NCBI GenBank assembly: GCA_964036045.1
Contig: OZ038378.1
Location: forward strand, 15,066,001 to 15,130,000
Length of the DNA: 64,000 nt
Source of the DNA: Eutreptiella sp. 'Long Island Sound 2002'
Taxonomy: Eukaryota > Protista > Euglenida
Direction of reading: 5' to 3'
In this document: one piece after another, positions 1 through 7,289 of the stretch
Layout: each line of letters begins with the position of its first letter
How positions within the stretch are numbered: position 1 is the first letter of the stretch
Position numbers and translations under genes: made by a program
Notes under the pieces: model-generated
The model's input: only the letters and a program-made list of their open reading frames with translations
What the model was told of the DNA's origin: nothing
Database searches by the model: none

Positions 1-299
1 GGGTCCGGTCTACCCTATTGGCCGTAGTGGGGTGCACTGCAGACCACAGTGCATCAGTCCCTGGCGTGGGCCTCCTGGCCCTTTTGGAGGCCTGAACCGG
101 GGTGCAAATTTCAATGTCCCACAGTGGCGTTAACGATGGTGGCTAGTGGCGCTGATGATGGTGGCTGTGACTTCGCTGGCGTGGTTGGTTGTGTTGCCGG
201 CGGCGTGTAGGCTTCCTTCCCGGCGGGTGGGGCCGACTCTAGCTGTGACATTTGTCCCTCCTCCTAGCCCCAAATAGATTCTTCCTCCGGGTCCGGGCC

Positions 300-1358
300 C
301 TAATCCTCCTGGCCGCAATTGGTCAGGGCCCTAATCCTCCGGGGGGGGGGGGGGGGGCGCACGGACACCTGCCAGAACAGTAGGGGGAAGCGACGATGTC
401 CCACATCAGCCGGGTGGTCCGCCCGTTCATTGCCTTTGATGCCAACACGGGAGGGAATGTGCAGCCACTTTACCGCGTCTCCGAATTGCTCGACGAGGTC
501 CAGAATTGCTGTCCACAGGTCCACATGTTTTCGTGCACCGGACGTGTTTTGCCATTTGTGTCGGCGCCACCGCTGTGCTCAACCTAGCACCCCATTGACC
601 ACCAGCAGTGAGTTCCGGCAGATGAGGGAGCGGTGTTTTGCCCGGTGCCCCTGCAGGCTACACAGCGCTGCCTGCGGTTCGCCTCGGCTGTTGGTTTGGT
701 CCTCCCCAAGGGGAATGTACTCCACCACATCGCGATGGTCCCCAAAGGATACGCCATACCCCCACCCACCCACCCACCCTTTCTCCGGGTGTTTTTCTGA
801 GGAGCCATCCGGGTAGATGATGTCCCATCCCTGGTTTTATTATGAGTTGATGATGGTTTCATATTGGGCCGCTAGGGCTGCGGCATTGTCGAATTTTTAC
901 TTCCTTTTGCATGCAGGGACGAACAATTTTTTTTGGGGGGGGGTGTTTGATATTGCCACTTTGGGGTGCTGCAGCACTGTGTTGTGACTCATGGATTGGA
1001 GCGCATGCACCAGTAGGGCAATTTCCTCCCTCGGCAACGTCGGGGTGGGGTGTTCCTCCCACCCCTGCAACACCTTCACCCACAGGGTTAGGAAGAGGTC
1101 CCACGTGCGACGGCCCATACGGCCGTTGTGCTTGTGCACGCATTGCTGGGACCACGCCGCCCTTACCGCTGACCATAGCGTAACGCCAAGGGGGGTGGTT
1201 AGGGACAGTTCGGGCTGCTCCCAAAGAATGACACTGGGATCCGTTGTCGGGCCATGGTCAATGGACGCAGGGCCCACGCATTGTGTCGCCACGTGGGCTG
1301 CCACCGAAAAGAACTTGCACCCCGTTACTGCATGTTGCATGGTTTCCAAGGACCCACA
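300..1358 (-). pseudogene. 3' part of an L1/Tx1-like non-LTR retrotransposon ORF2: second half of the CCHC (zf-RVT) finger followed by an RNase H domain, frameshifted
   Basis: Minus frames read CGSLETMQHAVTGC (1358-1317), then GWGYGVSFGDH...QTNSRGEPQAAL (773-579 ORF) and DLWTAIL...WLHIPSRVGIKGNERADH (524-300 ORF). These are RNase HI motifs spread over several frames. Confidence 0.85.
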
Positions 1359-1699
1359 CGACCGCGCGCACCCACACAGCGAACAGCAACATCAATAGCG
1401 CAAGCAAGAGCACCCTGAACCCTCGTATGGCCAGTAGCAGCCTCGCGCTATGCGGTGGTCAAGCCGGAGGAGTACGACACGCATCCGGTGGGCCGACGCA
1501 CCCTTTTGAAGGCACCCGACGGAGCTTCCTCGCCGGCTCTGTCTCGCTTGAACTTGGGGACCAGTCGCAACACGGTTGGCGCTCCATGGGCGGAGTTGCC
1601 GCCCGTCGACGTTGAGGTTTCCGCGGGAGCCAGCACTTGCTGCCGGCCCAGGCGTTGGGCCTCTGGTGTCGCCGGGTTGCTGCCCCCCCCCCCCCCTCC

Positions 1700-2659
1700 C
1701 CGCGCCCTCCGCTGTCTAGCGAGCTGTCCCTTGGGCCGCAGCCGGCCCCCAACCACCCGCGAAGACTCCCAGCCCCCGGACGGCTGCTCGGCTGCTTGCA
1801 CTGCCCGCTGCGGCCTGAAGGCCACGTGTTCTTTTCTCTGCCTCCACTGTTCCCGGACCCCGGATGGCCACAGCTGCTCGAGCCGGAGGGACACAGTACG
1901 GCTTCGCCACCGGCCTCCCGCCCCTTCTCGCGGCGGTCTCGGCCAGAAGTCTTCGGCCTCCGCCGCCGACTCCGGGTAGTAGCGCGCCAGCCACTGCAAC
2001 CACTCCCGTGTGAGCGCCGTGAGCGATCTCTGCTGCCACGCCTGTCGGGTCTTGGAGTCGAAGAACTTGACCGCGTCATCCCCCACTGCCCATGGCTGCA
2101 GATTGGTCGCCTCTCTGACCCACAGGAAGAGCTGGAAGGAGACGACCGCCAGCCCCACCACGGCCTAGTCGTCTGTGCCGCTGGCCTTTGCCGCCATGTG
2201 GAGAAGCATGACCGGTGACCCCCAGATACACTCCTTGGCCGCCGATCGCGTCGTTTTGGCCGCCTTGACGGACCTTTAGATTGTGGTACGTATGCTTGCG
2301 TCCGCCAACCACACCTCCCCTGCCATGGTGGCCGCGCTGATGACACCTTTGAGTGTGCTCTCGGACTTCCCCAGTCTGGTAGACTCCAGCAGCGTGTGTT
2401 CGAGTACCCGTTCAGCCGTGTCGTGCGGGAATCGTCCCTCCACCGCGACCAGTCGCCGCAGATGGCACTTGTACGTCCCCAAAGACGAGTCCTCCCATCC
2501 CACCAGGACGAGGGTCTGCCAGCTGTGAAGGGCGTCTTGCCACTGCAGCCGCTCCAACTTGTGGAGAGCGCCCTCCCAGGTGTGAGCACCTCGTCCACCC
2601 GTGGTACGTCCCCGTGGCTTTCCCCCCACTACCCCCAGTCGTCGGGGGCCTCCCTCCAT
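1700..2659 (-). pseudogene. Decayed tyrosine recombinase (SAM-like N-domain + catalytic domain)
   Basis: WEDSSLGTYKCHLRRL...GKSESTLKGVISAA (N-domain), AVVSFQLFLWVREA (F-LR-x-x-E box with R>W), KFFDSKT, and a degenerate H..R / GGWES region. In-frame stops at 2278-2276 and 2167-2165. Confidence 0.7.
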
Positions 2660-3670
2660 TAGTCGCTCTCGACGGGGCATTGGAACCACCAGTGCTTGAC
2701 ACGGCAGACGTCGCAAGGATACCCCGGCTTGCCGCGGCGGCTTGCCGGTTTTGAGCACTTTGCCCCCTTTGGACTCGTATGTTTCCTCTGGTGTCCCCAT
2801 GTTGGTGAACCTGTCCTTCGCGCACTCATTGCGTCTATCTTGCACGTGTTGTGGGGCCACCTTCCCGGTCTTTGGCTTGTCCGCGGGCTTGGTTTCCGAA
2901 GATCTCGGCTTCGACTGGCGTTGTTGCTCCGGTGCCTCACTCAATAGGGCCTTCACCTCCTCCTTCTCGACCTCAAAGAGCACGTGGGACCACACCTCGG
3001 ACAGGGCCCCAATGGCCGCCTCGTACTCGGAGTCCAGCATGCTCTGAACATTGTCAGACGCCCAATTCGCCGGCACCCCTGCCAGCGCTCGCGCCCAGTC
3101 TGGCTTTGCAACATTCGCCTCCAACTTGCGGCCTGCCTCCGGCACAAATACCACTTTGCGTAGCTGCGGCCCTGTTTTGGCCGCTCTCGGCTCCTGAATC
3201 GTCTGCACCTGCTTTTCCATGATGAGCTTCATGGCCTCCATCTCCTGCCGCATCCGCTCCAGGTCCGCTGCCACCGACTTGTCTTTTTGGGAATCCCCCG
3301 CAGCCGAACTGCCCCCAAGGGACACCACGTCTACGTGTCCCTTTTCAGGGGTTCCGCTCCCGGTTGCCGCCTCCGCGTGCTCCGCGGACATGTAGAACGT
3401 GCGGTCGTTCCAGTTGGACGTGCGCTTGTGCAGGGATCCGAAGGCTACGACTTGCTCGTATATGCCTTCCATGGACCCTTTCAGCCCGTACTTCTGCCGT
3501 AGCCCGTCCGCCAGCTCCACGACGTCGACCGCTGCTTCCTTGGCCGCGGCCATGAGTCTGTCGGTGTCCTGTTGCAGGGTAGCCGCATTCAGCAGCTGCT
3601 TTGCCAGTTTATGTTGGCCCTGCTCGACGTAATCCTCAAAGGTGATCGGCTGGGAATCTTGTTCTGACAT
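2659..3670 (-). pseudogene. Gag-like ORF1 of the YR element, ending in a C-x2-C-x3-H-x4-C knuckle; frameshifted by a 10-bp duplication
   Basis: ATG at 3670 (MSEQDSQP...), with a coiled-coil-like stretch (DLERMRQEMEAMK). The +1 frame ends YPCDVCRVKHWWFQCPVESD* (stop 2661-2659). Removing the duplicated CGGCAAGCCG near 2726-2745 restores KVLKTGKPPGYPCDVC. Confidence 0.7.
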
Positions 3671-3780
3671 GTTCAGGGCGACGGCACACCACAAAACAAA
3701 CAAACACTAGGCGAGCGCGCACAAGGTACCCTCCTCCCTCCCCCTTGCCCAATTTAAACTCAAGTTTACTTCATAAAATT

Positions 3781-4745
3781 TAGGCAAGCCGTCCCCGCTG
3801 GTTGCCAATTGGCGAGGCAGACGCCCACCGTGAGCTTTTTCCCACAACGTGGTTTGTATAAAGTGCCTATCTACTGGGGGGAGGAGTAGTTTGTGCCATG
3901 CTTGCCATACCTCTGGTCGTTGGCGCGGAGTTTCTGGTGTTAGCCCCATCAGATACCGGAGCATGCCGCGCCGGTTCAAGTCCAGCCAAAAGGAGGGGGT
4001 TGCCGTCTCCGGGGTGGATGGTCAGGTTTTGGGGTGGGCTCATAGTAAGCAGAGGCCTACCTGGTACACCGGTTCCCATGTACGGGGGAGCCCCCCCCCC
4101 CCCCCCCCCCTCGAGGGCTTCCATTTGGGTGACCGTCCGTACCCCCCGCCTGATCATGGCCGGTGAGTAATATGTGTTCTCATGGGTGTCACAGAACCAC
4201 GCGGAGTGCCACAGGAGCATTCCCAGGACAAGTTCTTCTTTGGGCGTTAGTATCGGCGCCTTTTTCCGCAGCAAGGAGAAAGCCTTGCATGACATTCCTA
4301 AGAAGAGATAGGTTTTCCACGGGATGGGGCCCAGCTGGAGCCACGGTAGATACCGTCCGTCCAGATGTATCCCATTGTTTTGCACCCATGCCTCAAATTG
4401 TCGCCGGGACGCCGGGACACTGTTGGCACTCCCTGTGGCTCCGTCTTGAACAGCATAAAGGGGGTGGTGTGCTGCCACAGGAGGAATATGCGTGGTTGGG
4501 GTAGGTGGTACCCTCCCTGAGTGGGGGCAGGGCCATGATCGGCAGTGTCAGCCCCCAGCTATTGAGCCTTAGCGCCACCTTGTAAATCACCGAGATTTTT
4601 GCCACCACCGGGTCCGTCAGGAAGTACGCCCTTGCGGGGAAGATAAACAAGGGGAGTACCCATTCCTGGAACAGCGCCACCCGTTCGTCCTGGGTCAGCT
4701 GGAGCACGGGCGTTCGGTAGCTGAGTATCCGTTGCTTCATGGCCC
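3781..4745 (-). pseudogene. Middle part of the same LINE ORF2 (post-RT region to the start of zf-RVT)
   Basis: MKQRILSYR...ERVALFQEWVLPLFIFPARAYF, then WQAWHKLLLPPVDRHFIQTTLW-KKLTVGVCLANWQPAGTAC, with frameshifts. Confidence 0.8.
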
Positions 4746-4799
4746 AATGCCCCCCCCCCCCCCCACCCGGAATGAAGAATCATGCCCCCCCCCCCCCCC

Positions 4800-5240
4800 C
4801 CCTTGCTACTTATGTCAATGTTCAAGGCCCAATTTATTTTTGCCAGGGTGGTCAAGAATATAGCCGTCTCCCCCCCCAATCAGGAATTAAGCAAGGAGAC
4901 CCCCTGTCCTCAGCAGTGTTCGTAATGGTGTGCTCAGTCCTGATACACGCACTGCGGGCAGTGTCACCGCATGTGCACATCTTGTTTTATGCAGACGACC
5001 TACTGTTGTATATCCCCCTTCCTGCCCCCGCCCAACGTGCATCCTCCTGCCCCCCATATTCAAGCATCTTCGACAGTTTGGCTTTTTTGTGGGGTTACAA
5101 ATAAACCTGTGCAAATCGGCATTCCTAACCAAGGGAGCCTGGACCGACTAGTGGATCACAGTCCTAAAGTCCTTTGGAGTAGAGGTAAAACGAAAGGTCA
5201 AATATCTGGGAAGTCTACAAAAATGGTGCGGTACATCGGT
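4800..5240 (+). pseudogene. Non-LTR reverse transcriptase fragment (domains 4-7), inverted relative to the rest of the LINE
   Basis: GIKQGDPLS (QGDPLS from 4892), FYADDLLLY (YADD 4988-4999), GLQINLCKS, VKYLG (5197-5211). Confidence 0.9.
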
Positions 5241-5791
5241 AAGTGACAGTTCTACTAAAGCACGCGGTGCGCGCGGTGCGGGCGCGCGGTGCGTTGAGGC
5301 ACCCTCTCAGTCAACGTTTGACAGACTTTTCGAAGACTTTGGGGTTTTTTATGGTCAGTTCTCCCCCTCTCACCTCCCGTCGGCACAAAGGATATCAGAA
5401 AGCGGGAATTAGGGTTGAAGAGACAATAGGGTGCTTGTTGTTGCAACGCCACTTGCTCACCAGCAGAGCTGGAGAGATATTTTCGGTGTCGTGGTGTATT
5501 TAGCTTTGCAATTTTTCCTATGGTTGAATTGCATTTTGCAACCCGCCCCCAATTCCCAAGATCGGGGGTCAATAGCCCAAATGGAACAAAGCGTTGTGGC
5601 TTAGACCCTGAGCAGGTGATGCCTAATCACCTCAAAGAGAGGTTGCTAGCTCAAGCGTAGGGGTAGGCATCATGTATCCCTCTTTTGGGGGGTCACGTGC
5701 GTAGCATACCTGAATGGGTGATGTTGGGATTTTGACCCCACCCTGTATCTGTACCGGTACGGATTTGCTAGTGATGAACGCATGCATGTGA

Positions 5792-6235
5792 CATGGTACC
5801 CCGCCCCGCTTGTATAAGCTATGCCAATGTACACAATTATTACGGTCCCTACGCCTATTGTAGCTTGGACAAGGGCGTGGCTTGCGCGCAACACATACAA
5901 TTGCCGACACACACGTGCGCAGGCCACGTGTGCTGAAATTGGCAATTCAGGACCTATGGGATGCATCAGACTGAAAAAGAAATTCTTGGTGCACCAGCAG
6001 GGGGCCACATGTGCTGAAATTGGCAAATGTGACAACAAACCCATGTCTTATGTGGCCGCACTACATTTCGTACATAAATTAAATTACGTACACAATTATT
6101 ACGGTCCCTACGCCTATTGTAGCTTGGACAAGGGCGTAGCTTATACAAGGGGGCCGCAAGCAGGTCAACAAAGCACTCCAAACATGCACAGCCTGGTATG
6201 CATATGCAGCAATGTTCGGGGGGGGGGGTACCATG
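5792..6235. mobile_element. MITE-like non-autonomous TIR element, related to the element at 60553-61833
   Basis: Left CATGGTACCCC..CTTGTATAAGCTATGCC; right GGCGTAGCTTATACAAG...GGGGTACCATG (split by about 60 bp). Internal direct repeat AATTATTACGGTCCCTACGCCTATTGTAGCTTGGACAAGGGCGT at about 5836 and about 6095. Confidence 0.6.
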
Positions 6236-7289
6236 CCCCCCCCCCTTGCCGATGGCGCAGTGGCCCAAGGGGTTTTGTGAAATGAAAGTGCAACTTGAAA
6301 ATGTTTGGTGTCATCCTGCGGTGCATCGCTGAGGCTCTCAGTCTCAAGACAATTGTGAACGTCGGTTGCAACTCCTCCAAACCCGATGGCAGTGGTAGGC
6401 GGTGGGGACAGACAACGTTCGGAAGTGGGGGACTCCACGCGCTCAATGGGGAAGGTGAGCCACTCCACGGGGCAACCACAGCAAAGCTGCTGTGTATGGC
6501 CTGCGCGCTCGTAGGTGATGGCGACACACTCCGGGAAGGATAAGAGGCCCACAACAGTGGCAGGCACACCCTGTGATGCTTCTCAGGTGAAAGACAGTAC
6601 TGCCTGGCGCCAAAAGGTCAGCATTCATTGCCATGTGACCAGTGGAAAGCAAAGGAGGCAAAATATAGTCACACCAATATTTTCGAATGCACAAGGTGCC
6701 CTGCTGCCCACTCAGCCTGCTGCCCACTCTTACACCCCAACATGGATAATTCCACCCAAACACAACAATTGGCCACCCATTTGTGATGCTAAGGCTCCTA
6801 TGACCGCTTTTGCGCAACATTCCATGGTACCGCCATTCTACGCCAACCGGGCTAAAGTCACACCACGCGCCCGCACTGCGCACAACGCACGTTAGGCACC
6901 CTCTGACACACCCTGTAGTCCATCTAATGAATGTGGGCTGCTGCAAATGTACACAGTGTGATTTGCTGGTTTTCCAGTCTCTGCCCCATTCCCTTGCACA
7001 TTCTTCGTGCTAGCTGGGGGTTCCTCCACCCCTTGTGGGGCAATAAATATGGTGGGTATACCAACCAGACCTTGGGGGAATGTTTGCCCGGCGCGCGCCC
7101 GGCGCGCTACTTTTAGGGGGCGTTGTCGCACGGTGCGCGCACGGTGCGCGCACGGTGCGTGCACGGTGCGCGCACGGTTCAATGTTTTTGGGATGGTTGC
7201 CCAACTTGTACCCTGTTGAATGGCCCCCATAGAAACCAGGGGTTGCCATAATAAAAAAAAAAAAACTCGGAGTGTCCAATACGCCCTAT

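Follow-up and report, generated by a model that had tools for sequence, protein, structure and literature searches.

In all probability, the 2.4-kb insert at 3783-1347 on the minus strand of the window (the whole 64-kb stretch of DNA that was analysed) is a single, old and non-functional copy, truncated at its 3′ end, of an autonomous tyrosine-recombinase (YR) retrotransposon family of about 6.1 kb, and it owes its present form to a full-length insertion followed by a later deletion. An earlier note on this DNA had read the insert as an RT-less Gag-YR family that “moved in this form”. A mobile element of that kind would stand as a new class among eukaryotic transposons. This reading does not hold, since longer copies in the genome carry RT downstream of YR, and no locus shares the 3′ end of the window copy or either of its junctions. 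The features of the window to which we refer are these:

3784..4704, minus strand: host L1-like LINE relic, upstream of the insertion; it ends ...GGGACGGCTTGC (G-T-A-C) and is collinear with eight LINE copies at 70-90% identity.
1347..3783, minus strand: 3′-truncated, decayed YR retrotransposon copy (about 6.1 kb when whole), equivalent to the first ~2,670 of 6,066-6,123 element positions.
3675..3783, minus strand: A1 unit of the split direct repeats, 93-94% identical to A1 and A2 of the full-length elements L031 and L049.
2662..3670, minus strand: remnant of the gag-like ORF, with its body (3670-2732) in one frame and a C-x2-C-x3-H-x4-C knuckle (2769-2662) in another.
1448..2659, minus strand: dead tyrosine-recombinase ORF, with in-frame stops at 2276-2278 and 2165-2167 and a deletion of ~220 bp at about 1953-1957.
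1344..1350, minus strand: deletion junction between internal element sequence (...GGGTCCTTG) and LINE sequence (GAAACC...), with TTG(G) microhomology, placed by aligning the window base by base to three element copies and eight LINE copies.
1..1346, minus strand: host LINE relic, downstream of the insertion, resuming with GAAACC (E-T-M-Q-H...); 18 bp of LINE are missing between the two parts.
4806..5212, plus strand: inverted RT-palm fragment of the host LINE-like repeat, head-to-head with the minus-strand part (RVT_1, 32.5 bits, window 4739-5104, plus strand).

The insert comprises 2,437 bp and, as had been claimed from the sequence, lies on the minus strand within the codons of the C-terminal Cys/His motif of an L1-like LINE relic. 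The GC content of the region is 60-70%, and its minus-strand ORFs are a long one at 3703-2276 and a second at 2161-1448. A Pfam search of the window's own ORFs gave no match for gag, YR or the minus-strand LINE pieces. The domain search and self-comparison also bore out the claim that the insert holds no RT, no ITR and no internal repeats: neither an ITR nor an RT domain was found in it, and a search for internal repeats able to serve as termini returned chance-level matches only. A1 is the sole terminal repeat that the window copy has kept, one of four repeat units; A2, B1 and B2 were sought across the whole window and were not found. Equivalents of pol residues 1-540 are retained, and the RT domain sits at pol 788-922. 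The fragment amounts to the 5′ 40% of an element of the VIPER/TATE type.

When the 2.28-Gb genome from which the window comes was searched for similar DNA, 54 matches were returned; 29 related loci were compared in detail. The window copy is 91% identical to the C8 copy (L034/L049), 83% identical to the C9 copy (L003/L050) and 74% identical to 26 further copies. The relatives at ~74% align over its first ~1,860 bp, and the copies aligning to its last 600 bp are those of C8, C9 and C25 (L032). Three of the relatives, L031, L033 and L049, are 6.07-6.12 kb long and bear split direct repeats in the arrangement A1...B1A2...B2. The closest, L049 on C8, is a complete 6.12-kb element (429-6551) that continues for 3.5 kb beyond the point at which the window copy breaks off. 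Its A1 (422-537) and A2 (5920-6035) are 93% identical and its B1 (5719-5927) and B2 (6343-6551) 97.6% identical; in L031 the A repeat measures 113 bp and the B repeat 218 bp. Read from the 5′ end, a full-length member consists of A1, the gag-like ORF (350 aa, CCHC-type knuckle), the YR ORF (479 aa), pol, B1-A2, a spacer and B2. In all three elements YR directly follows gag, and the pol ORF of 1,258 aa, which lies in another frame than YR and overlaps it, has its RT downstream. The RT fragment of L049 matched RVT_1 with 43.5 bits, over the cut-off of 29.6 bits, and the pol ORF of L033 matched it with E=3e-13; longer copies with RT downstream of YR are thus at hand. A search for methyltransferase (MT) and SGNH hydrolase domains in pol, including its C-terminus, detected none.

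The 74% subfamily is young and largely intact (L031 and L033 are 98.7% identical), and among the 29 relatives gag is intact in 24 and YR in 17. The window copy and those of C8, C9 and C25 form an older YR-retrotransposon subfamily, 74% identical to the young one. The A repeat is better conserved than this: window 3675-3783 is 93-95% identical to L031:287-399 and 5732-5844, a comparison between subfamilies, where coding DNA stands at ~74%. This suggests either a strong cis-acting constraint or an exchange of terminal repeats between the subfamilies.

The two ends of the insert, which the earlier note took to be fixed to about 3 bp, fared differently. Homology begins at window 3782-3784 in all 29 related loci compared, the flanks of these loci are mutually unlike, and the element starts with CTAAA(G/T)TTTATG; the 5′ end is genuine and had been placed ~3 bp off. 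The 3′ boundary, however, lies at 1347/1346 and not at 1360, and it is no terminus. The three closest copies (L034/L049, L003/L050 and L032) read straight through the equivalent of window 1347, and past it L034, L003 and L032 share a conserved continuation, ...GGGTCCTTG|CCAACGTCGCGCGG... (also given as CCAACGTCGCGCGGCGG...). Every one of the 29 compared loci extends past the equivalent of the breakpoint, at about element coordinate 2,670 of 6,066, and among them homology stops at 1347 in the window copy only. As a check for rearrangement, the missing 3′ part of the element was sought elsewhere in the 64-kb window and was absent. Window position 1347 is a deletion scar, not an element terminus. 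Probes of 120 bp over the 5′ and 3′ junctions were each single-copy in the 2.28-Gb genome, with no second spanning locus. As both junctions are unique, the form with the ends of the window copy never spread.

These observations bear on the possibility that the insert represents a distinct compact Gag+YR family without RT that moves as it stands, whether by borrowing a partner's RT in trans or, like a Crypton, as DNA. Its homology to gag and YR, its lack of RT and its exact 5′ end are what such a family would display, and YR retrotransposons are known to have non-autonomous derivatives, such as SIRE and VIPER (PMC6681497). However, its 3′ end is common to no other copy and both junctions are unique, all 29 relatives run on into pol/RT, and the A2, B1 and B2 of the full-length elements are missing. 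In addition, the YR of the window copy is without its catalytic residues, a frameshift has put the gag knuckle out of frame, and the ends that suggested clean excision are an artefact. We consider an RT-less family of this kind hardly credible. A non-autonomous family of deletion derivatives was also rejected, as no copies share termini, the junctions are unique and 29 of 29 relatives pass the breakpoint. The fallback offered in the earlier note, a deletion derivative of a VIPER/TATE-like element, was essentially right, except in the nature of the loss, which was neither internal nor clean-ended and took away the entire 3′ 3.5 kb, with A2, B1 and B2, and also ~14-18 bp of LINE.

The sequence of the LINE site accounts for the impression of clean ends. 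Eight intact LINE copies bridge the site as ...ACGGCnTGC-CCCATCTGCGGGCAATTG-GAAACC..., that is ...GGGACGGCnTGC CCCATCTGCGGGCAATTG GAAACCACGCAACATGCAG..., and encode G-T-A-C-P-I-C-G-Q-L-E-T-T-Q-H there. The window reads ...GGGACGGCTTGC | element ... GTCGTGTGGGTCCTTG | GAAACCATGCAACATGCAG, and the 18 bp of LINE that encode P-I-C-G-Q-L in the eight copies are absent from it. The proposal that the insert splits the LINE motif exactly therefore fails, and the “CGSL” codons of the window (TGTGGGTCCTTG) are element DNA. The same stretch is found in L032 and L034 outside any LINE, and it matches the element copies at 15 of 16 positions (L032, non-LINE context) as compared to 9 of 16 for LINE. The motif appeared exactly split because TGTGGGTCCTTG of the element encodes C-G-S-L and mimics the lost C-G-Q-L. 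When TGTGGGTCCTTG is set against the lost LINE stretch TGCGGGCAATTG, 8 of 12 positions are alike and there is an exact TTG (or TTGG) at the join; this TTG(G) microhomology accounts for the position of the junction. The case is a cautionary one: the scar of a microhomology deletion can resemble a host motif that was split with precision, and the ends then look clean although they are not.

The host repeat has a history of its own. All eight related LINE copies (70-90% identical) carry the same head-to-head inversion, in which the RT-palm is set against the thumb, the Zn-knuckle and the 3′ part. Since the inversion is common to eight of eight copies, the inverted form itself was propagated or duplicated and was not made anew at each insertion.

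The most likely explanation for the locus has two steps. A full-length copy would have integrated by means of its own recombinase at TGC|CCC, within the Zn-knuckle codons of the LINE relic, and recombinase integration would give the exact 5′ end at 3783. Later, one microhomology-mediated deletion of about 3.5 kb would have joined a site within the element, ~100 bp after the stop codon of YR, to the LINE at a point 18 bp outside the original 3′ end. It would have used the imperfect homology TGYGGGnnnTTG and would have removed RT, B1, A2 and B2 as well as 14-18 bp of LINE. Direct observation covers the truncation, the absence of LINE bases, the microhomology, the decayed state of gag and YR and the fact that both junctions are unique; from this we infer that the deletion came after the insertion and not with it, an order of events that a single locus cannot reveal. 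It speaks against this history that a distal breakpoint only 18 bp from the presumed original 3′ end is a coincidence for a random deletion, although the locus was picked precisely for looking exact.

Another possibility is that truncation preceded insertion: a DNA intermediate that was incomplete would have been end-joined to a broken LINE, with a normal terminus at the 5′ side, TTG(G) microhomology at the 3′ side and a loss of 18 bp of target. End-joining capture usually leaves behind just such a combination, target bases lost and microhomology at one of the junctions, and a single break explains LINE breakpoints 18 bp apart more easily than a later 3.5-kb deletion does. Three other copies of the family are exact at the 5′ end and truncated at the 3′ end, and DIRS-1 reportedly amplifies via linear single-stranded cDNA (PMC7192593). 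On the other hand, the 5′ end of the window copy is the exact, recombinase-made terminus of 29 copies. The standard model for split direct repeats rebuilds the ends from B1A2, so that a partial intermediate should lack such a 5′ end, and in partial minus-strand cDNAs it is the 3′ end of the element that should survive rather than the 5′ end. That the copy had lost its 3′ part before it inserted is less likely than full-length insertion followed by deletion, and we regard it as improbable. If it were true, the joining of an incomplete replication intermediate at a chromosome break would show that VIPER-like YR retrotransposons have a side route of integration that does not depend on the recombinase.

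The three copies that start at the exact 5′ end and break off abruptly on the 3′ side are L051 (C1:14983285-14984718), L052 (C22:10025451-10026769) and L053 (C9:62038474-62039302), which stop at element positions 1460, 1325 and 835, respectively. L052 is 98% identical to intact copies and is therefore young; a search of its flanks against the genome gave matches to short repeats that end before the junction. Together, L051 to L053 hint at a recurrent process rather than independent later deletions. Another irregular member is L054 (G000:C16:10385000-10394600), a young copy, 98-99% identical and otherwise complete, in which element positions 1737-2223 are inverted internally.

Whichever way it was truncated, the window copy is decayed. 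The gag-like and YR ORFs described in the earlier note are both present by homology, and both are damaged. In a tblastn search, the intact 350-aa gag aligned to the window at 72% identity over residues 1-330, and residues 318-350 then followed in a different frame. DNA alignment attributes this shift of the knuckle to a 10-bp insertion at about 2724-2733. At the gag stop and YR start, a loss of 1 bp (TAAATG to TAATG) joins the shifted frame to YR, and for this reason the window shows an artificial ORF of 475 aa. The claim of a gag-like ORF with a Cys/His knuckle is thus correct as to the ORF, for which there was no Pfam match, while the knuckle is out of frame owing to the 10-bp insertion and then the 1-bp deletion. 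Similarly, the second ORF is YR-related as had been claimed, while it gave no Pfam match, contains two in-frame stops and has lost its HxxR, W and Y codons. Global alignment with the intact 479-aa YR of L033 showed that the window YR lacks 73-74 codons, equivalent to residues 235-308, and with them WHAWRRAGA (HxxR), GRW (W) and ARWY (the catalytic Tyr). In translation, the Arg of the first catalytic motif is replaced by Trp. The fragment is a dead piece of an autonomous family and has no functional consequence in itself.

The assignment of the family's second ORF to the tyrosine recombinases draws on several lines of evidence. The intact 479-aa YR contains the motifs LRVGEA, WHAWRRAGA, GRW and ARWY, so that the pattern R...HxxR...(H/W)...Y is present in the parent ORF and has been deleted from the window copy. 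Against PF00589 the YR of an intact relative scored E=3e-4 and 21.1 bits, below the cut-off of 27.1, and a distant homologue, P0015, scored E=4e-3. An HMM profile built from eight YR homologues gave nothing meaningful against PDB sequences. An AlphaFold model made from the eight-sequence alignment had a mean pLDDT of 48, reaching 70-83 over residues 150-300 only. When this model was submitted to Foldseek, the top matches were all tyrosine recombinases (XerA, Cre, lambda Int, P2 Int, XerH, Tn1549 Int and XerD; best E=1e-3). On the sub-threshold PF00589 match, the R/HxxR/W/Y motifs and the Foldseek result with a model of partly low confidence, we accept the ORF as a tyrosine recombinase. A word-based protein search retrieved 16 unnamed ENA proteins with YR and one with the RT half of pol, and no named VIPER/TATE relative. 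In the Atlas, the RT half has as its neighbours clusters with few recorded taxa, all of them Euglenozoa.

The parent family closely resembles the VIPER/TATE elements of kinetoplastids, which have the order gag-YR-RT/RH and A1...B1A2...B2 repeats (Ribeiro et al. 2019, PMC6681497). Both have a gag-like ORF, YR and RT/RH in that order with overlapping frames, and the split direct repeats are of 113 + 218 bp in the parent family compared to 173 + 219 bp in T. cruzi. Both also possess a CCHC-type gag knuckle, which is C-x2-C-x3-H-x4-C in the parent family and C-x2-C-x4-H-x4-C in VIPER/TATE, and a host within the phylum Euglenozoa. In contrast, the host here is a euglenid and not a kinetoplastid, the two being sister lineages within Euglenozoa, and according to PMC9210276 the VIPER/TATE architecture is confined to kinetoplastids. 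The parent family thus displays this architecture, in gene order and repeats, in a euglenid. It carries the RT expected of YR retrotransposons (order DIRS in the broad sense), the part that is lost in the window copy. The older subfamily adds a data point, in that a euglenid genome holds YR retrotransposons with split direct repeats and the gene order of VIPER/TATE.

Other known systems fit less well. SIRE, the VIPER-derived element of T. cruzi, is like the window fragment a shortened YR-retrotransposon derivative without RT. However, SIRE is a multi-copy family, whereas the window fragment occurs once, its junctions are found nowhere else in the genome, and it shows no sign of amplification. 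Ngaro/PAT elements share split direct repeats, a gag-like ORF, RT and YR with the parent family. Their gene order is gag-RT/RH-YR (PMC9210276), and membership was rejected because YR precedes RT in the parent family and the C-terminus of pol has no MT domain. The likeness of the window fragment to Cryptons, in having YR and no RT, is superficial; a Crypton identity was rejected because gag and an A1 repeat are present in the fragment, whose sequence is 91% identical to that of a 6.12-kb element with RT.

The order of YR before RT is also found well outside the family. L055:2-2640 on the minus strand (G000:C1:15036001-15038640) is a distant element with YR and then RT, and its DNA gave no match to the parent family. 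In this element and in L048 (ENA ERZ25074135 ctg9830), YR lies upstream of RT, with 26-33% identity in YR and 28% in RT. As these lineages are very divergent, the gene order marks a diverse group in this organism, not one family.

Two structural observations complete the description. At the B|A junction of L031 (5726-5770; also L049:5918-5960) there is a near-perfect palindrome of 45 nt with a 19-bp stem and a 5-nt loop. It folds at -15.6 kcal/mol as DNA (z = -6.8), and 0 of 200 shuffles fold as well. The palindrome is whole only at the internal B1-A2 junction and at the putative B2-A1 circle junction, and the window retains its right part only, at about 3783-3749. It may serve as a recombinase or priming site. 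The second observation concerns the 24-mer of the Euglena spliced leader. Used as a probe genome-wide (G000), it occurred in 5,458 copies, compared to 0 for the reversed control, and it is on this count that the host is taken to be a euglenid. The copies are dispersed on both strands (for example C1:29492-29515 and C1:15592071-15592094) and are far more scattered than a few tandem arrays of SL-RNA genes would be; one possibility is that they are retroposed copies of cDNAs that carried the spliced leader.
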